A DNA stretch of 64,000 bases, from NCBI GenBank assembly GCA_946965045.2, contig OX337241.1, positions 1,240,001-1,304,000 on the forward strand. Direction: 5' to 3'. Positions 40,583-55,100 of this stretch are shown in pieces. The notes below the pieces were generated by a model, which saw only the letters and a program-made list of their open reading frames with translations, had not been told where the DNA came from and made no database searches. Made by a program: the position numbers and the translations under genes. Positions within the stretch are counted from its first letter, which is position 1; each line of letters starts with the position of its first letter. This stretch comes from Epithemia pelagica (Eukaryota; Protista; Bacillariophyta).

Positions 40583-41132
40583 CCATTGCTCCTCTCACTC
40601 AGACGAAAACGAGAAATGTATGGGTTCAACGTACCAATCCTCGAATCGATGCGGTGTGACGGAACGCGCTGAACATGGTGAATGATACAAGTAGCTCTCT
40701 CTATTCACGATGATGAGAACCAAGATGGTTTGTTGACAGTTGACAACGTATCTTGAGAATCTTTTCCTGGGATTGGGATAGATCTTGTTGATCAGGAGAT
40801 AATACTACATACCTACAGATAATATATATAGTAAAAAGTGCTGTATGTTTATAAGTACTCCTGTATATTCGTGACTCCTTCATCATCGAATCATACAAGC
40901 ATTGAGTTCAGGGAGTGTGTTCCTGTCGTAGACTCCTGTATAATTAGTACTAGAAGCACAATCCTCGATAGCGTTTTGCGTTATTAGTGTCCGACTCGCG
41001 ACTTCCCAGTGGCTTTAATAAGTATTTTATTACCTGTAATGCTATGTGTGACTTCTTCCGAACGCTAGAATTTCGTCAAAAATGACGAAAAAACGGTTGA
41101 TTGTTGACCATGGTGGAGGGCCATCCCGACCT

Positions 41133-41214: not shown

Positions 41215-41806
41215 GCATCGGCATCATCCTCAATAACATGATCATCGGACCCCGCCCACACACGATAGTCTCGTACAAAACGAAGTTTTTCTGGGAGAAC
41301 GCGAGATTGTCGAGTTTCGGAAGCACTTTTCACATGAGAGGCATAATTAGAAGGGCTTTATTCATAAGATGGCTGGCGTGATTTACGTAGATTTCCTACT
41401 GGAGCGCTACGACAGGAACATTCTGTCTGAACTCAGCTTGTAGGAGGGAGGAGGGTAGCTAGGAGTACCTAGGAGTAGTAAGGCTATCTCCACCCGGGGC
41501 CGCTAAAGGTCCAAAAACCGCTATTGAACTCCACGACGTCCTCTAACCGCTAAACGTAATGTGCTAAAGCTAAGATGGTGGCGACGACTGACAAGTCAGT
41601 CACAAGTTCTACCGACGCATACCTACACGACAAGCTTGCTGATTGAACTGAATCCAAGTGCGTATGAGGCAATCAATAATGACTCTGGATTTGAGGTGCA
41701 AGAGGCAAGCTCATCGGTCACACTGTCTTCAGACTGATCGTTTCAAGAAGGTGCTCTTCCCTGCAGGTCTAGCATCCATTGACTGTGTATCGTTCTGAGT
41801 TTACGG

Positions 41807-42597
41807 TTGAAGAGACTGATGCTGGGGAATCCTACGAAACGCGACAACGTATTTAGATGGTATCGAGTGGTGTTAAATCTACCAGGCACCAAGTCCTATC
41901 GTCCGGGAGAGCCCTGGATTTCAAAACGGAGACAGAACGGGGTGTTGGCTGCGGATGCTCACGCTTATGTAGACGACCTGCGGGGGACTGGCCCCACGTC
42001 TCATGATGCATGGCAAATAAGCTCTGTTATCGCGAAAACTGCGTCGTTTTATGGGGTTCAAGACGCGGCTAGGAAACGACGTGAACAGACTCAGCGCCCT
42101 GGTGTGTGGGCCGGAGTTGTTTGCGGCACAGCACCCGACAGACCATTCATTTCTGTCACCTGGGAGAAAACGAAGCGAGAAGTAGCAAGATTGATAAAAC
42201 CGGCTACCTGCTCTAGCACCTTGCGTTGGGCAGAGCATACCCAACTCTGTTGTTGTATCTCAACGGGGTGTATGCCACAATTAACATTTGGCGCCCTGGA
42301 AGAGATGAAGATGGTTGGCGAGTGAACTTGGATTCTGACAATTTAAGAAACATTGGAGACGAACAGAATGCTCCAGACAGAGTTCGCTTGGTGGATCGAA
42401 TGACTTTCGACGTATCAGCGATGGAAGAGCTGACCCAGGCGGACCACCCACCCGAGAGATTTCTGCGACCAGAGAAGGACACGTCGCAAGTCCGCTATTA
42501 TTTCGGTGATGCCTCGGGCGCAGGTTTCGGTATGTCGGGCTGGTCGCCAGGAGACGAAGAAATAGAAGTTGACTTTGGTGCATGGGAAGCTTCAGCC
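41807..42597 (+). pseudogene. DIRS-like reverse transcriptase fragment (5'-truncated, frameshifted) and RNase H N-terminus
   Basis: VLNLPG...AHAYVDDLRG...GVQDAARKRR...WAG; frame change near 42200; AYPTLLLYLNGVY...WRPGRDEDGW; YFGDASGAGFG. Confidence 0.8.
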
Positions 42598-43381
42598 TGT
42601 TAGAATTCTCACCGTCTATGGTGGTTAGATTCTACATCTCATCGATTCCCCATGTCACATAGCCTCGTGCTATCGCATCATGCCATCTAGCTTCGAGCTA
42701 TGTTCCCTAGCTTCGCGCTATATCGACCTAGATTTCTTCGTAAATCATGAAAAGTGAGAATAGATTGACGAACTCACTCTCAAGACTAAACTGGGTCGTG
42801 CGGTATTACAACGGACGTAAATTTGGCCGTTGCTCGGACACTATACGAACGCCCTAAGCGTACGCGCCCGAAATCATCGAGCGCGCCCAAGCGACATCCG
42901 AGCGCTGTCGGCATCTATCCGACCCAACGGTCTAAGTATCCCAAGCACGACACACGATCACGCGAGACCATATTTCCATTCCCACAATCTCCAAATTGTC
43001 AACAAGCTGCGCGCCATGAAAACAACTATGCCAATCCAAAGCAAGAGCTGTTGACCCTGTATATGTTATCCGTCCACATATACATGTCATATACATCACA
43101 TGAATCGACTCCAATTATTCCAAACCTGTTGCCGCCAAGAACCTATGACACATGACCCTTGGCAGGACCGAACATTTCACGTAGACCTATCGTAGTAATC
43201 AACACACAATCTAACAATATCACCATTTATCACATCCTCTTTTGTGTCCCGACTATCCTTTTGATAGACTACGACTTGCTTTCCTCTCTTACCCGTGGAG
43301 AGGTTTGTATCGGTTGGTGACTACCTGATTGTCTGCTCTACCGAGCATCAACGCCACTGCAATTCCAAGAGAATTGTAACA
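42598..43381 (+). mobile_element. Solo LTR (784 bp) of the Copia-2 family inserted in the DIRS RNase H
   Basis: TGTTAGAATTC...TTGTAACA, homologous to 46584-47366 reversed; TSD CAGCC at 42593-42597 and 43382-43386; removing it restores WEASA-MQGSSSNFREL in frame. Confidence 0.95.
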
Positions 43382-43386
43382 CAGCC

Positions 43387-44286
43387 ATGCAAGGGTCATC
43401 CTCCAACTTCCGTGAATTAGCGAACATTGTCATGAAGATTGAGGATCTGGACCAAGAAGGCAGAGTCAACGCCAAGACGGAATTCTTCATATTTACTGAC
43501 AACGTGCATGCTGAAGCGGCATTCTACCGAGGCTCTGCGAAGTCTCCCGAGGTGCTGCATCTCATGTTCCGGTTACACAAGATATTGATGAAAGGGGTCG
43601 CGTTCATTCATGTTGTGTGGGTCACCGGTAAGCGCATGATCGCGCAAGGGAGTGACGGTCTTTCTCGGTCCGACCTCACTAGCGGGGTCTTACGCGGGTC
43701 TAATATGTTGGACTACGTCCCTCTCCACCTCACTGCGGGAGAAAGACAGCCCGCGAGAATTCAACGCTTGTTGGGAGATGTACTTGGACCCCGGCTCAAG
43801 GAGGTAGTCCTTATGGAGCCCGAGCAGTGGTTTACTGCACCCCAAGACACCAATGGGGTATTCGTTTGGCAGCCACCTCCTTGTCTGGCTGATGTTGCAA
43901 TCTACATGCTCAGCGAGGCATGGCACATACGGCCTTGGAATGTACATGTCGTATTGATACCTTCGCTAATGAGCGGCAAATGGCGAAAGATGCTTTTCAA
44001 GATTTCGGACGTGATTTGTGTTTTACCGTTTGGCGATGAGTGGTGGCCGCGAGATCAGGAGTTCGAACCTCTCACTCTCGCGTTTATCTTTCCATTGTTG
44101 AACAGAACTCCGTGGCGAGTTAAATTCGAGTCACTTTTTTGCAACCAAGGACATAGTTTGCGCACGTTGCACAGGCAACCTGTCCCATTCGCGAGGAATT
44201 ATCTGCGCGAACTATGGTCATCCGCGTGGGCACTGGAGGGCGTGTCGTTCGGCCTTCCATCCCCATTGTTACACCGTGGGATGTGA
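43387..44286 (+). CDS. DIRS-like RNase H C-terminal half plus DNA adenine methyltransferase-like (MT) domain
   Basis: SSNFRELAN, FIFTDN, HVVWVTGKRMIAQGSDGLSR (RNase H); WF...FVWQPPPCLA...VVLIPSLMSGKWRKML resembles the DIRS1 MT pattern. Confidence 0.72.
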   Translation: MQGSSSNFRELANIVMKIEDLDQEGRVNAKTEFFIFTDNVHAEAAFYRGSAKSPEVLHLMFRLHKILMKGVAFIHVVWVTGKRMIAQGSDGLSRSDLTSGVLRGSNMLDYVPLHLTAGERQPARIQRLLGDVLGPRLKEVVLMEPEQWFTAPQDTNGVFVWQPPPCLADVAIYMLSEAWHIRPWNVHVVLIPSLMSGKWRKMLFKISDVICVLPFGDEWWPRDQEFEPLTLAFIFPLLNRTPWRVKFESLFCNQGHSLRTLHRQPVPFARNYLRELWSSAWALEGVSFGLPSPLLHRGM

Positions 44287-45691
44287 ACCGGATCCGTTTC
44301 CAAGAGATCTTCAACCCAAGCGAACTGAGTTCAATGAAAACGGCGAGCTGGTCGAAGAAGCGAGGGGATGGGAAACGACGGACAAAGAAAAGAAGGACAT
44401 GGCTGGTTGGTTCACATGTGCACGCGCTGGGGATCACTTGATGACGACGTTCCAGTGCACCCTATGTCACTTTCGGAACATCTACAAGAGGGACCCAGAC
44501 ATATCGTCTCGAGAGGACGATTGGGCAATGAAGTGTATTACAAGAGCGAATCTCGACGCGTTCTGGGCACGGAGGTCCAGTACTGTACGAAGCAATTTGA
44601 TGGAAGTCTCTCGGGTGATGAGGATTCTTAAGGACCTACGAATCGAGAATCCGTGTCCCAACAACCCTCGAGGACCCGTTCCGTTGAAGGACACTGTTGG
44701 GATGGCGGTAGCCATGATATCTCTACAACGCTCATTGGACAAGGGCAAAAATTCAACCACCATCCAATGGGACACTATGCGTGGGATTCGATCGAGTTTA
44801 AGCAATTTGGTCCATACCACACCCTCTGGATCTGAGGGGTCTATTCTATCAGATGGTCGTCGATCCACTCACATTACTACAAGTCCCACTAACTCCTTGT
44901 GGCTCAAGAGATTCATGATTGGCTGCCACGAACGCATGGGAGACGTGAAGATTCAAGATGTCACAGTCTCGATTGAGTTACTCCTCGCTCTCCAGACGTT
45001 GTTGGAACAAGGATGGCGGCTGGAGGGTGAGAGGTCTCCAGGCTTTTCAAAAAGAAAGTTTGAAACGGCGCTTTTGGGTGCAGTGTTGACTCTGGGTTTC
45101 TCGTCCGGCCTAAGAGGAGAAGAGTTAGGTCACATTCGATTGAGCGAATCAAGACTGTGTACAGAACTTGGCCTAAAGCACCCAACCAAGGCTCACGTGG
45201 TGCTGGCATTACAAGGCCGATTTAAAAATACAGCTGTGTATCGGCGTCACAAGATTCCTCTTGTGCTAGTAACCAAATCAGGAATAAGGAATGCAGATTG
45301 GATGATTCGACTTTTGGATCTCTACTCAGTTGTGGGAATTGAAGAGGGGCCGCTTATCCGAATGGATCCTCGTCATGACCAAGCGGCAAGCATTTGTGAA
45401 ATTGACATATTGTGGCATAAGAGGCTGCATATGTTACAGGTGGTGCATCCCTCCCTGATACCAGACTTGTCGGAAACTGGGGCGACCTTCAGTGTCCGGC
45501 GCTCACTGAGAAGAGGCTCAACCACCCAAGCGAGGAATCAAAAGGTTCCAAAGGATGTGGTGAAGCTGAACAACAGATGGAGATCGGAAGATCAGGCTGG
45601 GAATCGGGTTGCTCAATCAGAGATGATAGAAGTATACACCGACGTCGTGGCGGCCTTAGGTACACTTTTGCAGTACTCAGAGGCTCTGTGA
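44102..45691 (+). CDS. Tyrosine recombinase of the DIRS-like element; frame open from 44102 and overlapping pol
   Basis: GLRGEEL (box I Arg), RRSLRRGSTT, NNRWRS, MIEVYTD (Tyr nucleophile); Cys/His-rich N-terminus (CANYGH..W..CRSAFHPHCY; FQCTLCHF); start codon unclear. Confidence 0.85.
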   Translation, partial: TELRGELNSSHFFATKDIVCARCTGNLSHSRGIICANYGHPRGHWRACRSAFHPHCYTVGCEPDPFPRDLQPKRTEFNENGELVEEARGWETTDKEKKDMAGWFTCARAGDHLMTTFQCTLCHFRNIYKRDPDISSREDDWAMKCITRANLDAFWARRSSTVRSNLMEVSRVMRILKDLRIENPCPNNPRGPVPLKDTVGMAVAMISLQRSLDKGKNSTTIQWDTMRGIRSSLSNLVHTTPSGSEGSILSDGRRSTHITTSPTNSLWLKRFMIGCHERMGDVKIQDVTVSIELLLALQTLLEQGWRLEGERSPGFSKRKFETALLGAVLTLGFSSGLRGEELGHIRLSESRLCTELGLKHPTKAHVVLALQGRFKNTAVYRRHKIPLVLVTKSGIRNADWMIRLLDLYSVVGIEEGPLIRMDPRHDQAASICEIDILWHKRLHMLQVVHPSLIPDLSETGATFSVRRSLRRGSTTQARNQKVPKDVVKLNNRWRSEDQAGNRVAQSEMIEVYTDVVAALGTLLQYSEAL

Positions 45692-46210
45692 AAAGAAAAA
45701 TCTTCGAGATGAGAGCAAGCTGACAGATTGCTTTTGGATATTCATCCAGAGAAGTGGACAAGGTGGGGGATAAGGATAAGCCATCGCAAACATGGTTTGT
45801 TCGTCGTTTGAGATTTGGCTGTTGGACATTGAAAGCTGAGAACGTGTTCGAACTTCAAAGGGATCTCACAGTGGCATGTGACGATTTCAATGAATGGCAT
45901 CTAGCGGTGGTTCGCCCCGCGTGCCGACTCGCTTTGGCGAGGGTTCCGGACTGTTCATCCGGTGGACGAGTCTACGGTCAATGAAGGCGTGTCGTGACAC
46001 TTGACAGTGGTCTGGCATGCGTCGATCCCAAAGAGCAGTACATTTATTTGATGTCTGCTTTACTCCTGTGGGTTGGAGTTCCCCTATCGATAATGTACGT
46101 AGACAGTACTATACGTGCAACTGCAAACCCTTTCCCGTTCTCTGGTGGTGACCATGCCAACGTGTAGGCAGCGAAGTAAACGGTGACTCGCGCGGATGTA
46201 CGAGATACCA

Positions 46211-46279
46211 GCTCCGCTATCCGCTATTTTTGCCGCTATTCGGGGCCCCAAATAGCGTCAAAATAGCGGATAGCGGAGC
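46211..46279. repeat. GC-rich hairpin in the right subterminal region of TIR element A
   Basis: Perfect 20-bp arms GCTCCGCTATCCGCTATTTT (46211-46230) and AAAATAGCGGATAGCGGAGC (46260-46279), with further inner pairing. Confidence 0.9.
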
Positions 46280-46583
46280 AATCGCTAACCGTCGGCATAA
46301 ATGAAATAACGCATGATGCCAACAGTGTGTTTTTTGAATCTCTCGCGTGACGACGTTGTTTGATTCCGCAACTTCCGCGCCCGCCACCCTTTTTTAACCG
46401 AATCAACAGAGGGCATATGCGTAATGCGTACGACCTACGCGCGGTATATAGAGATAGTGGCAAGAATAGCGGAGATCGTGTGGAGTTTATTTTCCCTTGG
46501 CTCCGCTAATCCGCTATCCGGATAGCGAGGCCAATCAGAAAGCCCCGATACGTCAGCATAGCGGCGCTCGGGTGGAGATAGCC

Positions 46584-47366
46584 TGTTACAATTCTTTCTG
46601 AATCGTAGGGACATTGATGCTCGGTAGAGCAGACAATCAGGTAGGTCACCAACCGATACAAGCTTCTCAGGGTCAGAGAAGCAAGCAAGTCGAAGTCTAT
46701 CAGAAGGATAGTCGGGACACAAAAGAGGATGTGATAAATGGTGATATTGTTAGATTGTGTGTTGATTACTACGATAGGTCTACGTGAAATGTTCGGTCCT
46801 GCCAAGGGTCATGTATCATAGGTTCTTGGCGGCAACAGGTTTGGAATAGTTGGAGTTGATTCATGTGATGTATATGACATGTATATGTGGGCGGATAACA
46901 TATACAGGGTCAACAGCTCTTGCTTTGGGTTGGCATAGTTGTTTTCATGGCGCGCAGCTTGTTGACAATTTGGAGATTGTGGGAATGGAAATATGGTCTC
47001 GCGTGATCGTGTGTCGTGCTTGGGATACTTAGACCGTTGGATCGGATAGATGCCGATAGCGCTCGGATGTCGCTTGGGCGCGCTCGATGATTTCGGGCGC
47101 GTACGCTTAGGGCGTTAGTACAGTGTCCGAGCAACGGCCAAATTTACGTCCGTTGTAATACCGCACGACCCAATTTAGTCTTGAGAGTGAGTTCGTCAAT
47201 CTATTCTCACTTTTCATGATTTGCGAAGAAATATAGGTCGATATAGCGCGAAGCTAGGAAACATAGCTCGAAGCTAGAGGGCATGATGCGATAGCACGAG
47301 GCTATGTGACATGGGGAATCGATGAGATGTAGAATTTAACCACCATAGACGGTGAGAATTCTAACA
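46584..47366 (-). repeat. 3' LTR of Copia-2
   Basis: TGTTAG...GTAACA on the minus strand; the gag-pol stop TAG lies in its first 6 nt. Confidence 0.96.
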
Positions 47367-50300
47367 CTCCCCACAACTCGTCGTTTCAGCCTTGTCATCA
47401 TTGGATTTGTTGAGGTCTTGAACTTCTCCTTTCCAAAACAACAATGGCTTGAGCATGGGCCAGATAGATACGAAATCCCAATGTTTGCTAAGGATATCGG
47501 CGGGGTTGGTCTTTCCATCTTTCCAGTAGAATGCAACATACTTTGCTGCGATGGCTTCACGAACTCGGTGGTATGACAGAAGATGGTGTCTCTTGGATAG
47601 TATGGAATGAGGAACGGTTGCATTGAGCACAACAGATCTGTTATCTCCGTACATGTAACTTCGCTCTCGGATAGGTACTCCAAGGTAGCGGAGAGAATGT
47701 CGTAATTCTGTAATCTGATCTATTGCTGTCCTTGCAGCCACGAACTCGGATCCATAGGTAGCAGTTTCCACTGTGCTCTGTCTCTTGCTGTACCAGTCAA
47801 TAGGTGTTCCGTTCAACAAATGTAGAACAGCAGTGACGGATTTACCAGTGACTATGTCATGCATGAGATTGGCATCAACATAATGAGTTGTAGTAACATA
47901 GCGGCCAAGAGGTGTTGGGCAGTCTTCAGGAATACGTTCACTTGCATTCGAATAGACAGTGCGAGTCCAATCAAATTCTTGGGTAGGAAGACTTGAATAA
48001 TCAGGCTCTCCAATCCTAAATCTGATTGCGCCTTCTGGGAGATGTGCAAGGTATCCATAGATACGCTTGGCTCTATCAAGATGTCCTTTCCTCGGAGCAG
48101 CACGAAAGCGTGATAGCGTCATTGTAGCGGTGAAGACGTCGAAACGACCAATAGTGATCACCCATTGAAGTTGTCCAATCAGAGTTTGGAAATGGTTAGT
48201 ACCTTCTTCATCAAGGAGCTCAGAATCGTCCAATTCAGGATGGTCTCCACCAATAAGAGGTGTTTTGGCTTTCTTGGGTTTCTCCTTGAAGATTCGTTCG
48301 AAAGTGTCCATCATCTTACCAATGTAGCGTCTTGGATCTGCTACTAATGTTCCATCAGAATCCTTGGTGTAACAACATCCCAAGTGGAAATCAATAGGTC
48401 CATCTCCTTTGAGTTTGAAGTTGTATTTCTCCTTCAGGATCTTGCAGATATTCCCAGGATCAGTAGAAATAATGGCTAAGTCATCAACGTATACGGCAAT
48501 GTATTCGTAACAGTCTTCTCCAGGTGCCTTCCTCATCCAGATATCCGGATCTGCTTTGCTTGGTGAAAATCCCATGTCTGTCAAAACATCGAATAAGACA
48601 TCATGCCAGCGTGCGCCTGATGACTTCAATCCATAAAGTGCCTTGTATATAATCAGGATGTGACCTTCTAATTCCTTGAATTCAGGTCCTGCGACAATGA
48701 AAAGTTTCTCCCCTGTCAAGGCTTCCAGATATGCGTTTCCAATATCTGCTCCCCATATTTCCAAGTCATTCAAAGTACCCAGGAATAAGGCAATGCGGAG
48801 GTTGCGAATGGAAACAACACCTGAATAGATTGTCTCAACAGGTTCTTTTGTGAGATGTCCATCTGCGACAAGTCTTGCTTTATGTCGTCCATCATGTTTT
48901 ACGTCAAAGACAAGATGTACACGTATCTTATGATATCCTTCAGGTGCATTGGATACTTTCCCTTTAATGAAGATGGCTTTCCCAAAATCCTTGAATGTCT
49001 TGTAGGACTGGATCTGTGACAATTCTAATTCTGTTGCATCTTGCCACTTTGTGTTGCCATGTTGTTTATCAAGAGTGACAGCTTCCTCATAATTGCGTGG
49101 TACTTGGAATCCAAACTTATACTTGACGGAATGGTGAACTTGTTTAATCCTTGACTGTTTGGCTGCTCGAATGAGACGTTTGCTTGTTTTGACATAACGT
49201 TTCAAATGCTTCCATCCAGGTTCGTTGAGTAAATCATGTTTCTTTCCATAAATTGCTACAGTGATCGGATCATCATTGGCGATGAGTGATAAAGGTTCAT
49301 AGGTAGTCTCCCCAGTTTCCCAATCAACAAGCAAATTATATTTGCTCCCCTTGTAATCTGGATCAGTTGTGTTCAGTGGGCCTTGATGGGCAATGACGTC
49401 CCTGAACCTGAAAAGATTATCTCCAGAGGTTTGAGCTTGGTTATCTCGTTCGATATACTCCATGAGTTGATTATAGGATATCATCTCATCAACATCAGAA
49501 TTTGTCTTTCGGTAGATATACTTGACACGTTCTTCCTGTTTCGTTGCTTCTTCATTAAGATCAATGACTCGTTTGATGACACGTGCACGGTGTCGCTCCC
49601 CATTTTCTTCTGTGTCGCATAGGAATGTGCGTCCTATCATGTCGTCAAAATCGATCGTGGGCATTGGTTTGGATGGATCTTCACTATCACTGCGAATGAA
49701 GACAGTGTCAGCTTGCGTATCATTGTCATCCTTGTCAGACGAATCCTCCCCTGAAGGTCGATCCACACGTAGGTTAGGTGTAGTGGATTCAACACGGCGA
49801 ACGGCAGAACGGTAGATGATCTGGTTATCCTGGGTGAGAATCTTCCAAGTAAAAGAATCACCAACGTTGTGAGCAAAACCAACCCAGTGGCCAAGTTTCT
49901 CATCAGAAGAAGATGGATATGAACCGGAATTGGGTTCAGCGGGATCGACACGATAGTAAACCTCATCCCAGAAAGGAAAGAACAAGAGATGAGTAATGTC
50001 GGGTGGGCGTCCGGAGAGAGCCTCAAGAGGAGTGCGACCGGAGTGGGTGGGTGATGACGTATGGTTCAATAAGTCACAGACATACTCAAGGCAAAGAAGC
50101 CAGGTGTTGGCAGGGCAACCAGTGGCATTCATGAGAGCGTTGGTCATACGTTTAACGGTCTGGTAACGGTTTTCAGCCTTATTCTGGTGTTGATGATAAG
50201 GTTCGGATCGATACTCCCCAATAAGCAAAGTGCGAAGAATGTCTTTAACCTTTTGAGAGATGAGAGATGAACCACCATCACTGATAAGAGTCTCCATGGC

Positions 50301-53048
50301 ACCACGAAACCGGATATTGTCCTGAAGAGTATTGACAAACTGTTTGGTTGACTTGATCCCATAGATATCAGTAACCAGAGTATCTCGACCAACAAAGATT
50401 TGTGCGACTTTACCGCCATGGTCAACAGCAGGGGTGTCGGAGAAAACCGAGTCAGTAGCAACGGGTTCATGGCGTCGAGGTATATTAAGGACCGGATTGC
50501 GAGCCTTGAAATGTTTCTTGAGGGTGTCGTGGTCAAAAGTAATGCTACCATTACGTGTAGTGTGCTTGAACGTATCGGCAATAACATCTTCAGATTGCCA
50601 ACCAAAGAATGGACGGAACTTCTTCCAGTCATACGCTTCCTGGTAACGACGGTGGACAGAGGCATGAAGTGTAGGATCATTACCTTCTGCGTCAGCATAG
50701 ATAGAAAAGAAGGGTGCGTCGTCAGGTCCATGATCGTATGGGAGATCCAAAAGGAGATTGAGGTTACAAACAACACGATCAGTGTACTCCCCATAGTTGT
50801 CATATGGATGGTTCGACATACTACCATCAGTCTTGACGTGTTTCCAATCAGGATCATTGTCAGAGGGTGTGGGAGAATACGAATGGTCCAGAACACCAGG
50901 ATCCCATGTGTCGGGTGACGTGAAGATGATCTGAGGTAAGGTATCCATGTCATCGTCGCTGGGGATACCCAAGGAGTGGATGTAGGCTAACCCATCCTTG
51001 ATGTGAAGGGGTATGGCACGACCATCAAGTGTAGTGATGCGTTGTTTACCATCAACTTTAACAGATCGTTCATCAACAGCAAGTCCGAAATGCTCGAATT
51101 GACCAGGAGCATGGATAGATAAGCCCTTCCCATAATAAGCATATTCATTGAAGATGCCGACAATAGGTCCATCATTGGTCTCAAACTTTGCGGCACATGT
51201 GACGACAGGAAGTCCAGTAAGTTCATGGTTATCAATACCCACAATAGTGATATGGCGGCCAGTCTTAGAAAGGATGCGCATGTCAGAACCAGCAAGTCCT
51301 CCATTAGCACCACGGTCAATCAATTGATTCCCTGGTAAAGTAGATTTCCTGGAAAACAGATAGCGTGGAACATGTCCTGCTTGTTTATGCATGTTGGCTT
51401 TGAAAGTAACCTTCTTGCTCGTCTTGGACTTGGCGTTAGAAAGAACACTAGTCAGGTCAGTTGCCGGGTGATTGATATCAGTCGTCATGGCTTGGTTGAT
51501 AAATTGTGTAACCGGATCTGAATCATCTGAATGCTCAGTGACTACGCCAGGTGAGTCGTCATCAGATACAACTTGGTTGGGATCAGGATCAGGTTCCGGA
51601 TCAATGTCGAGGGCATGTGTTTGCACTGTCCTCGGTGTTGTTGATGAAGGTGTTTGAATCATCTTGTTATATTCAATGATCAACTTGCGATCTTCTTCAG
51701 AAAGTTTGAACCATAGGTCACGCGGTAGACTAACCTTGGACAAAGAGGATGGAGATTCAGATGTCGCTGTGGTGTTGTGGACATGATACTCCATATCATC
51801 TTGTGAGGTTATGTCAGCATCTGTATCTTGGCCATATAGTGATTCATGTTGTTTAACATGTCGACGGCGACTATGAACAGATGACTGGGTTGCTTGATCA
51901 TGGTCATAAGCTGCGTCTAGAAGGAGACGGAAGTATGATTGATAGCAAAGGGATTTTGCACCGGATTTGGTGTTCACCACATTATCCAAGATCTTGACTC
52001 GGCGGAGATCAGGTACCTTTTCTACAGCTTGCATGAGGAAGGTCATCCTGGTATGATCAGGGATGCGATCAGACAATGTCACTAAATTGTCTAGCAAACG
52101 TAGCTGCTCTTGAAAGTGTAGAAGAAATTGACGTGTTGTTCCGCGCCATGTGTCGTCAAGACGTAGATTGGAAATGTAGTTGGTTAAGCGGAGGACTTCT
52201 CGCTTTGCTAGGTCGGATTCGGTATGCAAAGAGTGTAACTTCTGCAATACGGCACGCGCATCTTCATCATGTTCATGTTCACGTACATAGGCTCGACCTT
52301 GGTCAGTCTGAATGATACGGACAAGAACGGAGTAAAGAAATACTTGTTGCTCTTGAAAAAGTTCTTCGGCATACTCATCATCATGGGGTGGTGTGTATTT
52401 GAAATTCAGAACGTTGGATAGGCCTTGAGCCTTAGCTGTAGTCTTGAATACACGCCAGAATGAATCGTAGTATCGTTCATCCTTGAATACCTCATATGCA
52501 GTTGCGTCGCGCTTAGTTCCCTTTCTGAATGCTGTAAGGTCTTGTTGAGATTGGGATGCGGCAGTAACTGTGCTGACAGATTTCACAGATGACGGTGACT
52601 TCATTGGCGAGACTGGGACTTGGCTAGGTGGTCCCTTAGAGAAATCTGTGTTGATCCTCCAAGTGTTGAACTCTTTCCTCGTTAGGTTCATCCAGTCGCT
52701 ATTGGATAGCTCGTCTTGAATTTCATTGGTCTTGTATGTGGCCCAATAAGCCAAGAGCTTGATCTGCTGTCTTGTGGGGCCTTGTAGATCATGTGTCTGT
52801 TTGTTGACCTTGTATTGTGTCAGTTCCTTCATGGATTCCTCGGTATTAGTTTGCATATACGAGATAACATGGGTAATGTTCTCAAAACCATGGTATTTCA
52901 TCCACTTCATTAAGTAGTCAGCCCTTTCTTTGGTAAAAAATTGGCAGACAGTAAATATGATGTGGTCGAATAGGTCTGTGTCCGAGACATTGTCTTGGTT
53001 ATCTTCTCCCTTAGGAGTCGTAGGTGTCTTGGGTGATTGAGGATCCAT
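47361..53048 (-). CDS. Copia-2 gag-pol polyprotein (1895 aa)
   Basis: PR LIDRGANGG; INT VATDSVF/LISDGG/HQNKAENRYQTVK; RT ADIGNAYL, KALYGLKSSG, AVYVDDL; RNase H YVDAN, TYGSEF, YGDNRS, NPADILSK. Confidence 0.97.
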   Translation of the reverse strand: MDPQSPKTPTTPKGEDNQDNVSDTDLFDHIIFTVCQFFTKERADYLMKWMKYHGFENITHVISYMQTNTEESMKELTQYKVNKQTHDLQGPTRQQIKLLAYWATYKTNEIQDELSNSDWMNLTRKEFNTWRINTDFSKGPPSQVPVSPMKSPSSVKSVSTVTAASQSQQDLTAFRKGTKRDATAYEVFKDERYYDSFWRVFKTTAKAQGLSNVLNFKYTPPHDDEYAEELFQEQQVFLYSVLVRIIQTDQGRAYVREHEHDEDARAVLQKLHSLHTESDLAKREVLRLTNYISNLRLDDTWRGTTRQFLLHFQEQLRLLDNLVTLSDRIPDHTRMTFLMQAVEKVPDLRRVKILDNVVNTKSGAKSLCYQSYFRLLLDAAYDHDQATQSSVHSRRRHVKQHESLYGQDTDADITSQDDMEYHVHNTTATSESPSSLSKVSLPRDLWFKLSEEDRKLIIEYNKMIQTPSSTTPRTVQTHALDIDPEPDPDPNQVVSDDDSPGVVTEHSDDSDPVTQFINQAMTTDINHPATDLTSVLSNAKSKTSKKVTFKANMHKQAGHVPRYLFSRKSTLPGNQLIDRGANGGLAGSDMRILSKTGRHITIVGIDNHELTGLPVVTCAAKFETNDGPIVGIFNEYAYYGKGLSIHAPGQFEHFGLAVDERSVKVDGKQRITTLDGRAIPLHIKDGLAYIHSLGIPSDDDMDTLPQIIFTSPDTWDPGVLDHSYSPTPSDNDPDWKHVKTDGSMSNHPYDNYGEYTDRVVCNLNLLLDLPYDHGPDDAPFFSIYADAEGNDPTLHASVHRRYQEAYDWKKFRPFFGWQSEDVIADTFKHTTRNGSITFDHDTLKKHFKARNPVLNIPRRHEPVATDSVFSDTPAVDHGGKVAQIFVGRDTLVTDIYGIKSTKQFVNTLQDNIRFRGAMETLISDGGSSLISQKVKDILRTLLIGEYRSEPYHQHQNKAENRYQTVKRMTNALMNATGCPANTWLLCLEYVCDLLNHTSSPTHSGRTPLEALSGRPPDITHLLFFPFWDEVYYRVDPAEPNSGSYPSSSDEKLGHWVGFAHNVGDSFTWKILTQDNQIIYRSAVRRVESTTPNLRVDRPSGEDSSDKDDNDTQADTVFIRSDSEDPSKPMPTIDFDDMIGRTFLCDTEENGERHRARVIKRVIDLNEEATKQEERVKYIYRKTNSDVDEMISYNQLMEYIERDNQAQTSGDNLFRFRDVIAHQGPLNTTDPDYKGSKYNLLVDWETGETTYEPLSLIANDDPITVAIYGKKHDLLNEPGWKHLKRYVKTSKRLIRAAKQSRIKQVHHSVKYKFGFQVPRNYEEAVTLDKQHGNTKWQDATELELSQIQSYKTFKDFGKAIFIKGKVSNAPEGYHKIRVHLVFDVKHDGRHKARLVADGHLTKEPVETIYSGVVSIRNLRIALFLGTLNDLEIWGADIGNAYLEALTGEKLFIVAGPEFKELEGHILIIYKALYGLKSSGARWHDVLFDVLTDMGFSPSKADPDIWMRKAPGEDCYEYIAVYVDDLAIISTDPGNICKILKEKYNFKLKGDGPIDFHLGCCYTKDSDGTLVADPRRYIGKMMDTFERIFKEKPKKAKTPLIGGDHPELDDSELLDEEGTNHFQTLIGQLQWVITIGRFDVFTATMTLSRFRAAPRKGHLDRAKRIYGYLAHLPEGAIRFRIGEPDYSSLPTQEFDWTRTVYSNASERIPEDCPTPLGRYVTTTHYVDANLMHDIVTGKSVTAVLHLLNGTPIDWYSKRQSTVETATYGSEFVAARTAIDQITELRHSLRYLGVPIRERSYMYGDNRSVVLNATVPHSILSKRHHLLSYHRVREAIAAKYVAFYWKDGKTNPADILSKHWDFVSIWPMLKPLLFWKGEVQDLNKSNDDKAETTSCGEC

Positions 53049-53368
53049 GGTGTTATTTGGTTGGTTCGATGTTTATTTAATGTGCGGTGTGATGTGGTTT
53101 ATTTAATGTGTGATGTGATGTGAACCCGGATGTACCACGTGTGCCACGTATGTACCACGTATGTAATACCCGGATGTGTGTTGTGATGTGCGACTCCTGG
53201 AAATTTCCGTTGATTTCGACAAATTTTCGCCGAGTTTCAACAAATTTTCGCCGAATTTTCGCGATTTGACGGGAATGTGTGGCGTGTTGTGCGACCAAGG
53301 GTACCCGGATGTGCGTTGAGTTTAAGTCTTGGAAAGGTTTTGAGAGGACGGGAGTTAACTATGAGTAA
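53049..53368 (-). repeat. Repeat-rich spacer between the extra ORF and gag-pol
   Basis: Plus-strand TTTATTTAATGTG x2, CCACGT x3, ACCCGGATGT x3, ACAAATTTTCGCCGA x2. Confidence 0.8.
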
Positions 53369-54148
53369 TTAAGCTTCGGTCTCTGAATCCTCACCCTCTT
53401 CCGAATGATCAGAGTCGCTTCCAGGCTCAGATGGGGCAGCACAAGCAACAGAAGAAGGGGTATCACCTTCAGCCAGGTGGTTCTCGACCTCGGTACGCAA
53501 AGGGTAGATAGTTGCACGATGGTCCTCGATGGTATGGACCTCGTGGATGTAGGCAACGTAGTTATCTAGGCGTACAACGTTAGGAGGCAGAGGGCAAGTC
53601 GTCGCGTTCACGACGTGGATGGTATTGTAGTATCCAGTTGGGCGCTCGAAGGTTAGGAAGCGGAGGTGGACAGTACGGATGGGGTTGCCCGAGAGGGCGG
53701 CAAAGATGAGGCGACGCCTCGGAGAACGATGAAGTTGGTCGTTCAGACGGTCAATGTCTTCTTGGTCGACGATGTGGGTCACCGATTGGAACTGGCGTTC
53801 GATCTGGGTCTCCCCACGGATGATCTCGGGATCGAAGGTCGAACAAGTTGGTTGGCGGAAGTACTTGATATGATCAGCAATCAACCGGGTGGTACGACGG
53901 GATCGAGAAGGGACGAGCCGACGAGGCGGACTCGGGGGCCGAAGCAACGGCGCAGGGATTGGAGCGTGAGGCTGGGTTGGAGTCTCGAATGGGTTGCTGT
54001 TGGAACTGTCGACGGAGATGTTGACCGATGTGTTGGCTGCCTTCGGCGTCGGCACCAGTTCCTGCTGCACCAGGGTATCGGGCTGCCCGGGATGCAGGTT
54101 GGCTCGATAGATCTGTCGTACAGGAGTGATAATCTCGTTAGTATCCAT
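53369..54148 (-). CDS. Copia-2 extra ORF (259 aa), unknown function
   Basis: Intact ATG-TAA ORF starting 36 nt after the 5' LTR, same sense as gag-pol; Pro-rich N-terminus, acidic C-terminus, no TM helix. Confidence 0.7.
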   Translation of the reverse strand: MDTNEIITPVRQIYRANLHPGQPDTLVQQELVPTPKAANTSVNISVDSSNSNPFETPTQPHAPIPAPLLRPPSPPRRLVPSRSRRTTRLIADHIKYFRQPTCSTFDPEIIRGETQIERQFQSVTHIVDQEDIDRLNDQLHRSPRRRLIFAALSGNPIRTVHLRFLTFERPTGYYNTIHVVNATTCPLPPNVVRLDNYVAYIHEVHTIEDHRATIYPLRTEVENHLAEGDTPSSVACAAPSEPGSDSDHSEEGEDSETEA

Positions 54149-54170
54149 GAAACCACAAGGAAATAAGCTT

Positions 54171-54184
54171 TGAGACTGTTAATC
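54171..54184 (-). promoter_or_regulatory. Putative primer-binding site complementary to a tRNA-Asn(GUU) anticodon arm
   Basis: GATTAACAGTCTCA directly follows the LTR CA; its complement is TGAGA-CTGTTAA-TC, i.e. stem, canonical loop with GTT anticodon, and two correctly pairing stem bases. Confidence 0.7.
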
Positions 54185-54967
54185 TGTTACAATTCTTTCT
54201 GAATCGTAGGGGCATTGATGCTCGGTAGAGCAGACAATCAGGTAGGTCACCAACCGATACAAGCTTCTCAGGGTCAGAGAAGCAAGCAAGTCGAAGTCTA
54301 TCAGAAGGATAGTCGGGACACAAAAGAGGATGTGATAAATGGTGATATTGTTAGATTGTGTGTTGATTACTACGATAGGTCTACGTGAAATGTTCGGTCC
54401 TGCCAAGGGTCATGTATCATAGGTTCTTGGCGGCAACAGGTTTGGAATAGTTGGAGTTGATTCATGTGATGTATATGACATGTATATGTGGGCGGATAAC
54501 ATATACAGGGTCAACAGCTCTTGCTTTGGGTTGGCATAGTTGTTTTCATGGCGCGCAGCTTGTTGACAATTTGGAGATTGTGGGAATGGAAATATGGTCT
54601 CGCGTGATCGTGTGTCGTGCTTGGGATACTTAGACCGTTGGATCGGATAGATGCCGATAGCGCTCGGATGTCGCTTGGGCGCGCTCGATGATTTCGGGCG
54701 CGTACGCTTAGGGCGTTAGTACAGTGTCCGAGCAACGGCCAAATTTACGTCCGTTGTAATACCGCACGACCCAATTTAGTCTTGAGAGTGAGTTCGTCAA
54801 TCTATTCTCACTTTTCATGATTTGCGAAGAAATATAGGTCGATATAGCGCGAAGCTAGGAAACATAGCTCGAAGCTAGAGGGCATGATGCGATAGCACGA
54901 GGCTATGTGACATGGGGAATCGATGAGATGTAGAATTTAACCACCATAGACGGTGAGAATTCTAACA
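54185..54967 (-). repeat. 5' LTR of Copia-2
   Basis: Direct repeat of 46584-47366; only difference seen is GGGAC vs GGGGC near the U5 end. Confidence 0.96.
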
Positions 54968-54975
54968 TAGCCTAA

Positions 54976-55100
54976 GGTACGAAGTACTCCTAGTAGGAGT
55001 ACGATGTACTGTTGTAGGAGTAGTAAAATGATACTCCTAGGAGTAGGAGTAGCTCCTAGGAGTAGCTATGGTAGTGAATCTCGAACTACCCCCTCTAGAA
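54976..55100. repeat. TAGGAGTA/TACTCCTA palindromic low-complexity tract; the left part is at about 41440-41478
   Basis: For example TACTCCTAGGAGTA and GTACTCCT-AGT-AGGAGTAC; continuous with the left flank once element A is removed. Confidence 0.7.

Follow-up and report, generated by a model that had tools for sequence, protein, structure and literature searches.

Pack-MULE and other Pack-TYPE elements are non-autonomous DNA transposons that carry captured fragments of host genes and are found as transposed copies. Among retroelements with a tyrosine recombinase (YR), an order of split direct repeats has been described for the PAT-like, Ngaro and VIPER elements (PMC6681497, PMC4157794). Diatoms are known to contain Harbinger-like elements (PMC2806351) and miniature inverted-repeat transposable elements (MITEs; PMC5859163); 14 DIRS-class elements have been reported from Phaeodactylum (PMC5859163), and DIRS is listed as a category of transposable elements (TEs) in Fragilariopsis (bioRxiv 10.1101/2025.04.02.646770). 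Here we analyze a locus in which sequences of these kinds lie inside one another, at positions 41479-54975 of a 64,000-nt stretch of the genome of the diatom Epithemia pelagica (contig OX337241.1, C17:1240001-1304000; hereafter the window). A preliminary description of this stretch had offered two readings of a DIRS-like segment found between Harbinger-type ends: a DIRS fragment that landed in a MITE of about 0.5 kb, or a Pack-type Harbinger that mobilizes a YR and a methyltransferase (MT)-like domain as cargo. We searched one genome (60.5 Mb, 23 contigs). The locus is very probably a one-off nest of four independent insertions, namely a PIF/Harbinger MITE, a PAT-like YR retroelement and two Copia elements, with no joint function.

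The outermost layer is the MITE, which is present in the window as two arms with their target-site duplications (TSDs) and terminal inverted repeats (TIRs):

41479-41481, no strand: left TAA TSD of the MITE, read directly; matches the TAA at 54973-54975.
41482-41555, plus strand: left arm of the MITE, with the 15-bp TIR at 41482-41496 and CCGCTA subterminal motifs; from family matches, colinear with an empty 455-bp copy.
46209-46583, plus strand: right arm of the MITE, with a palindrome at 46211-46279 and the right TIR at 46569-46583; from family matches and the empty copy.
54973-54975, no strand: right TAA TSD of the MITE, displaced 8.4 kb from the TIR by a Copia insertion; read directly.

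The TIR reads GGCTATCTCCACCCG at its left position, and its inverted copy ends the right arm. A repeat finder returned a perfect inverted pair of 16 nt (41481-41496 and 46569-46584), of which 15 bp make up the TIR proper by comparison with the family. Within the 449-bp shell CCGCTA or TAGCGG occurs 12 times, against a mean of 0.23 and a maximum of 4 in shuffled sequences; these counts and the junctions themselves bear out the TIRs, the TAA duplication and the subterminal repeats of the preliminary description. The left arm (first 75 bp) matches more than 30 genomic places at 91-97% identity, each match ending at base 75-76, and the right arm (375 bp before the right TIR) matches the same places. 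In an empty copy of 455 bp on contig C16 the two arms directly abut, and this copy is flanked by TAA in the orientation of the shell (TTA on the opposite strand). When the arms of the window are joined (left 75 bp plus right 375 bp), they align with the empty copy end to end at 94.7% identity.

Genome-wide, the 15-bp TIR has 62 + 61 matches, compared with 1 + 0 for a control pattern; the pairing and content of TIR pairs were derived from the 100 of these 123 matches that were listed. The pairs are mostly 750-820 bp apart and represent about 60 elements, with the 455-bp subtype present. TSDs were checked in 32 complete copies of the family from sampled loci, and 31 of them have matching 3-bp flanks (18 TTA, 13 TAA). 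At least six copies that are bounded by the TIRs and measure 3.0-3.15 kb (on C5, C6, C10 and C11, and two on C13) match DDE_Tnp_4 (PF13359) above the cut-off and contain a transposase open frame of 495-545 aa. Copies of this length also hold a second open reading frame (ORF) of 319 aa (locus L028:1962-2921), which was tested for a Myb/SANT-like feature; its sole Pfam match was NAM-associated, with an E of 0.0016, below the cut-off. The shell is a MITE of a PIF/Harbinger family that has an autonomous partner in the genome. The assignment to Harbinger made in the preliminary description thus holds, the cognate transposase whose location it had proposed to seek is encoded in the 3.0-3.15-kb copies, and DDE_Tnp_4 has no match inside the window, in agreement with its statement that the shell encloses no transposase.

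DIRS1-like elements carry inverted terminal repeats (PMC4157794), and the 15-bp inverted repeats could on that model be the retroelement's own, with no DNA-transposon shell around it. The MITE family refutes this reading: the TIRs and the adjoining 449 bp occur about 60 times without a retroelement, flanked by TTA or TAA, and the TIRs also stand around the DDE_Tnp_4 gene. The relatives of the insert, for their part, have direct repeats and not these TIRs. We regard a DIRS1-style origin of the repeats as next to inconceivable.

The MITE arms enclose a YR retroelement that is itself interrupted by a long terminal repeat (LTR) of a Copia element. Its repeats are denoted A and B, and its coding region comprises parts of a pol gene that encodes reverse transcriptase (RT) as well as RNase H:

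41556-46208, plus strand: internally deleted PAT-like DIRS YR retroelement of the form A-X-B, no TSD; termini match those of its relatives.
41556-41803, plus strand: repeat A (5' split direct repeat), from comparison with relatives.
41804-42193, plus strand: what is left of the RT, pol residues 171-303, which include the YVDD motif; from tblastn with the 758-aa pol of the C11 relative.
42226-42597, plus strand: pol residues 334-457, the connection and the beginning of RNase H, put in a different frame by a short deletion or frameshift; from tblastn.
42598-43381, minus strand: solo Copia LTR, with a CAGCC duplication at 42593-42597 and 43382-43386; from the repeat finder, junctions read.
43381-44280, plus strand: pol residues 456-754, the rest of RNase H and a C-terminal alpha/beta domain (putatively MT-like); from tblastn.
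44276-45691, plus strand: open YR ORF of 471 codons, in another frame and overlapping the end of pol; from AlphaFold/Foldseek and conserved residues.
45768-46208, plus strand: repeat B (3' split direct repeat), which ends in ...GAGATACC; from comparison with relatives.

Elements of about 9.6 kb on C11, C7, C2, C4 and C3 run colinear with the insert and are 63-75% identical to it; they were compared except for some 2-3 kb in the middle of each. In these relatives the first 250 bp (A) are repeated near the 3' end, and the last 450 bp before the second A (B) are repeated after it. The resulting order is A1-X-B1-A2-B2 (C11, C7, C3), with A1 and A2 98.8-100% and B1 and B2 99.8-100% identical. Both boundaries of the insert, which the preliminary description had suggested defining from full-length DIRS copies, coincide with these repeats. 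The insert opens on the very base with which repeat A opens in eight other copies; the sequence at this point is GTAATGTGC in the window and GTCATGTGC or TAYATGTGC in the others. Its last base is the last base of repeat B, which reads ...GAGATACC here and in C4 and ...GAGATGCC in both B1 and B2 of C11 and C7, so that the window, C11, C7 and C4 share the end consensus ...GAGAT(A/G)CC. The MITE resumes after the insert exactly where it broke off: zero bases are duplicated, zero are lost, and there is no TSD. The window copy and the C4 copy both have the one-unit form A-X-B, without A2-B2 and with exact ends.

Exact element termini together with a conservative junction fit integration by a tyrosine recombinase, and not repair filler or cargo capture. 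We infer that the recombinase integrated the retroelement from a circular intermediate; the A-X-B form could be due either to B1 and B2 recombining later or to a one-unit circle that was opened at the B|A junction and integrated. If repair or gene conversion had closed a break in the MITE with a random fragment of DIRS-like DNA as a patch, the copy would also be defective, as found here with its 5-kb internal loss and missing A2-B2, and the target site has no clear sequence similarity to the B|A junction. Such a patch is nevertheless very unlikely. Both ends of the insert correspond to the repeat termini of the family to the base and the MITE lost and gained no bases, a combination that filler DNA rarely produces, and C4 holds a further A-X-B copy with the same exact ends. 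Of the proposal that a DIRS fragment had landed in a MITE of about 0.5 kb, the host is therefore confirmed, as the shell rebuilds a 455-bp MITE, and so are the YR-retroelement termini; the insert is, however, no arbitrary fragment, since both its ends are canonical.

The other proposal, a Pack-type or composite Harbinger, treats the MITE ends and the YR cassette as a unit mobilized by the Harbinger transposase, with the recombinase gene as cargo. Several properties of the locus agree with it: both TIRs are intact, as are the CCGCTA motifs and the TAA duplication, autonomous sources of transposase exist in the genome, and the YR ORF is open and keeps its catalytic residues. However, the window is the sole locus in the genome at which MITE ends adjoin DIRS-like sequence. 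Among the left-arm matches listed, all other MITE copies run straight into MITE sequence at base 75-76, and none carries a DIRS insert, which is how the comparison of copies with and without the insert, proposed in the preliminary description, turned out; this is the outcome that the description itself had named as refuting its hybrid. Conversely, no MITE flanks were found at other DIRS-like loci, and the insert, far from having a near-identical copy, has no relative more than 75% identical genome-wide. The insert also has the exact termini of a retroelement and lacks junction scars, a pattern not expected of acquired cargo, and an 8.4-kb Copia now parts the supposed unit from its right-hand duplication. 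Mobilization of the YR cassette by a Pack-type Harbinger is thus extremely unlikely. The chance is just as slim that the 5.1-kb unit of MITE ends and YR-bearing remnant is still a substrate for the Harbinger transposase and could spread the recombinase gene by cut-and-paste; if it were, the unit would be a DNA-transposon/YR-retroelement chimera in the making.

Some points weigh against a one-off nest built around a PAT-like element. The window copy lacks the A2-B2 of full relatives, so its structure needs an extra step, whether B1/B2 recombination or a one-unit circle. The family would belong to PAT and not to Ngaro by virtue of its MT-like domain, which is putative and only hinted at. A single genome cannot show that the composite never moved, and leaves room for a past move that left no other copies. 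Finally, the census of long TIR pairs is based on the 100 of 123 TIR matches that were listed.

Some other MITE copies also harbor a nested element, though each of a different type from the YR insert: on C16 a palindromic element of 680 bp, on C7 the same Copia and on C3 a related LTR. The first of these lies in a second copy of the 455-bp subtype (C16:1049689-1050823); it is AT-rich, has long inverted ends (GGGTGCTTACTGAAATG...) and is located at the center of the internal palindrome of the MITE. At the locus in the window, the DNA flanking the MITE on both sides (41440-41478 and 54976-55075) is built of CTCCTAGGAGTAG-like palindromic motifs, and a 29-nt inverted pair lies to its left (40903-40931 and 41407-41435). 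The MITE may itself sit inside another repeat or a small TIR element. As for the retroelement, a preference for the MITE as target was considered and rejected, the 5' flanks of the eight other copies being unrelated to the MITE. After an isolated repeat A on C2 (C2:5290870-5291366) come short segments of repeat B, oriented the opposite way.

To define the coding content of the insert, we used an intact 758-aa pol ORF of the C11 relative as reference (L062:130-2406; C11:1058506-1060782) and compared it with the window by tblastn. Its predicted structure (predicted local distance difference test, pLDDT, 86) matches retroviral, caulimoviral and Ty3 RTs in Foldseek at E values of 4e-16 and below (4e-16 for the RT of Moloney murine leukemia virus). 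The RT fingers and palm fold spans pol residues 1-286 (VIA Z 12.3) and the RNase H fold residues 421-553 (Z 12.5). No integrase was seen in the 758-aa pol; RT, RNase H and a C-terminal domain take up the whole of its model. Weak leads hint that this post-RNase H domain is MT-like: its Atlas neighbors carry Dam or PCIF1_WW (scores 0.87-0.96), and the model resembles the PCIF1 methyltransferase with a Z of 6.8. Pfam Dam (PF05869) has no match in the proteins of the family or in the whole genome.

The window copy retains pol residues 171-303, 334-457 and 456-754, with a frame change between the first two pieces. Residues 1-170 are missing, and with them the RT fingers and most of the palm, while the YVDD motif is kept. 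In total, about 5 kb are absent, including everything upstream of pol residue 171 outside repeat A; the junction, at 41803/41804, directly follows that repeat. The solo LTR is inserted at pol residue 456/457, inside the RNase H fold and with CAGCC on both sides, and hence splits the RNase H as the preliminary description had it. With the loss of 5 kb, the frameshift and the LTR in its RNase H, this copy of the retroelement is dead. The same description had put DIRS-like RT, RNase H, MT and YR sequence at about 4.4 kb; RNase H and YR are indeed present, yet the retroelement portion measures 3.86 kb, the remainder between the TIRs being MITE, the RT is reduced to a remnant of residues 171-303, and the MT assignment has no support from sequence tests.

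The YR ORF is better preserved. Its AlphaFold model (pLDDT 85.6) has Cre, XerH, lambda integrase and the Tn1549 integrase as top Foldseek matches (probability 1.00, E 2e-3). Residues R280, K317, R409, R412, W435 and Y454, which make up the catalytic set of the recombinase, are conserved across 36 homologues, and so is an RxxR at the position of the HxxR box, where Arg replaces the His that is usual in tyrosine recombinases. An N-terminal Cys/His motif, GDHLM-x-FQC-x-LCHFRN, is conserved across the same 36 homologues.

Sequence-based searches returned little for either protein. Pfam gave no match for pol or YR, including Phage_integrase, either with the ORFs of the window or with the intact 758-aa pol and the 500-570-aa YR ORFs of the relatives; over 32 family members the sole match was to RVT_1, with an E of 0.052. 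Sequence and profile searches of the PDB returned no hit with pol, and with YR no more than chance hits. Relatives of pol are nonetheless abundant, with at least 781 at E ≤0.001 among 8000 candidates scored, many of them about 1250 aa long. The only named source among the pol relatives listed is Epithemia clementina; the rest are ENA, JGI or Logan records, many of them contigs of a few kb. None of the 120 pol relatives listed has a precomputed Pfam domain. Standard domain annotation seems to be blind to the whole retroelement family.

The second Copia insertion is full-length and abuts the right TIR:

46584-54967, minus strand: full-length Copia, with LTRs at 46584-47366 and 54185-54967 and a TAGCC duplication at 46579-46583 and 54968-54972; from the repeat finder, junctions and Pfam.
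47361-53048 and 53369-54148, minus strand: Copia ORFs, the polyprotein and an extra ORF, respectively.

Its 783-bp LTRs are identical at 782 of 783 positions, and the duplicated TAGCC constitutes the last 5 bp of the right TIR, which confirms the position at the TIR given in the preliminary description. The polyprotein ORF (1895 aa) matches Pfam RVT_2 at residues 1365-1584 (E 1e-24). A match to rve, the integrase core, at residues 899-952 is below the cut-off (E 0.0011, 19.6 bits); it lies upstream of the RT, which is the Copia order. The extra ORF (259 aa), between the 5' LTR and the polyprotein ORF, has no match in Pfam. The solo LTR, inverted relative to the full copy, is about 96% identical to the LTRs of the latter (751-752 matches, 30-31 mismatches, 3 gaps), and one Copia family has thus inserted at this locus twice, as had been claimed.

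Genome-wide, 569 candidate matches to the Copia LTR were found. The 40 that were scored are without exception at least 99% identical, and many lie 7601 bp apart, which points to full-length copies. The family is large and currently very active. With hundreds of near-identical Copia LTRs in the genome, two hits at one place are unremarkable. The same family, at 98-100% LTR identity, is nested in another MITE copy on C7 (C7:1902971-1906045) and lies 0.8 kb from a third MITE copy on C2 (C2:4957500-4960716), and an LTR that is 73% related is nested in a MITE on C3 (C3:3280312-3283386). The proximity of Copia and MITE may reflect clustering in TE islands or a target bias, in a sample that is biased because it was centered on MITEs.

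The duplications and junctions establish the order of the insertions, as the preliminary description had anticipated from the TSDs: the MITE came first, followed by the retroelement, the first Copia and the second Copia. In the course of events that we propose, a PIF/Harbinger MITE of the 455-bp type inserted at TAA, presumably moved in trans by the 3.0-3.15-kb autonomous copies of its family, which encode DDE_Tnp_4 and the 319-aa ORF. A PAT-like YR retroelement would then have integrated between MITE bases 75 and 76 by its own recombination. An insert that begins with the opening base of A and closes with the final base of B would correspond to a circle opened at the B|A junction, and the loss of about 5 kb may have occurred either before or after integration. 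The first Copia entered the RNase H region, where later recombination between its LTRs left the solo LTR with CAGCC kept on both sides. A second Copia of the same family has very recently entered the right TIR, within the final 5 bp.

Both the Harbinger and the PAT-like families are new, their kinds are already known, and there is nothing unusual about the nest. Insertions within insertions are commonplace where DNA is rich in repeats, and the locus matters little as a mechanism. The gain is in diatom annotation: a Harbinger family is defined with both its MITEs and its autonomous copies, and a large family of PAT-like YR retroelements that is invisible to Pfam comes into view. The two A-X-B copies with exact ends, in the window and on C4, bear on the mode of integration of such elements.

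Each layer of the nest can be set beside a described system. The Pack-MULE and Pack-TYPE elements resemble the locus in that the intact TIRs of a non-autonomous DNA transposon enclose foreign coding sequence; here, by contrast, the 'cargo' is an entire mobile element that has termini of its own and is present once. The shell conforms to Tourist-like PIF/Harbinger MITEs in its short TIRs, the 3-bp TWA TSD and the many non-coding copies of 0.45-0.8 kb, and its autonomous partners share the DDE_Tnp_4 transposase and a second ORF with those known, with no essential difference. The Copia layer is similar to diatom Ty1/Copia elements (CoDi groups, PMC2806351) in its RVT_2 with a weak integrase-core match upstream, TG...CA LTRs, 5-bp duplication, solo-LTR formation and high recent activity, and differs from them in the extra ORF near the 5' LTR. 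For the retroelement, PAT-like elements of the DIRS order (Pat1, Toc, Kangaroo) are closest, followed by Ngaro and VIPER, from which PAT is separated by a Dam-like MT domain that is hinted at here and missed by PF05869. The window copy differs from PAT-like elements in its one-unit A-X-B form, and its family does so in proteins too diverged for Pfam and PDB sequence searches and in RxxR for HxxR. The family shares with them a pol of RT and RNase H followed by a YR ORF, split direct repeats with internal repeats downstream of the YR, and insertion without target duplication.

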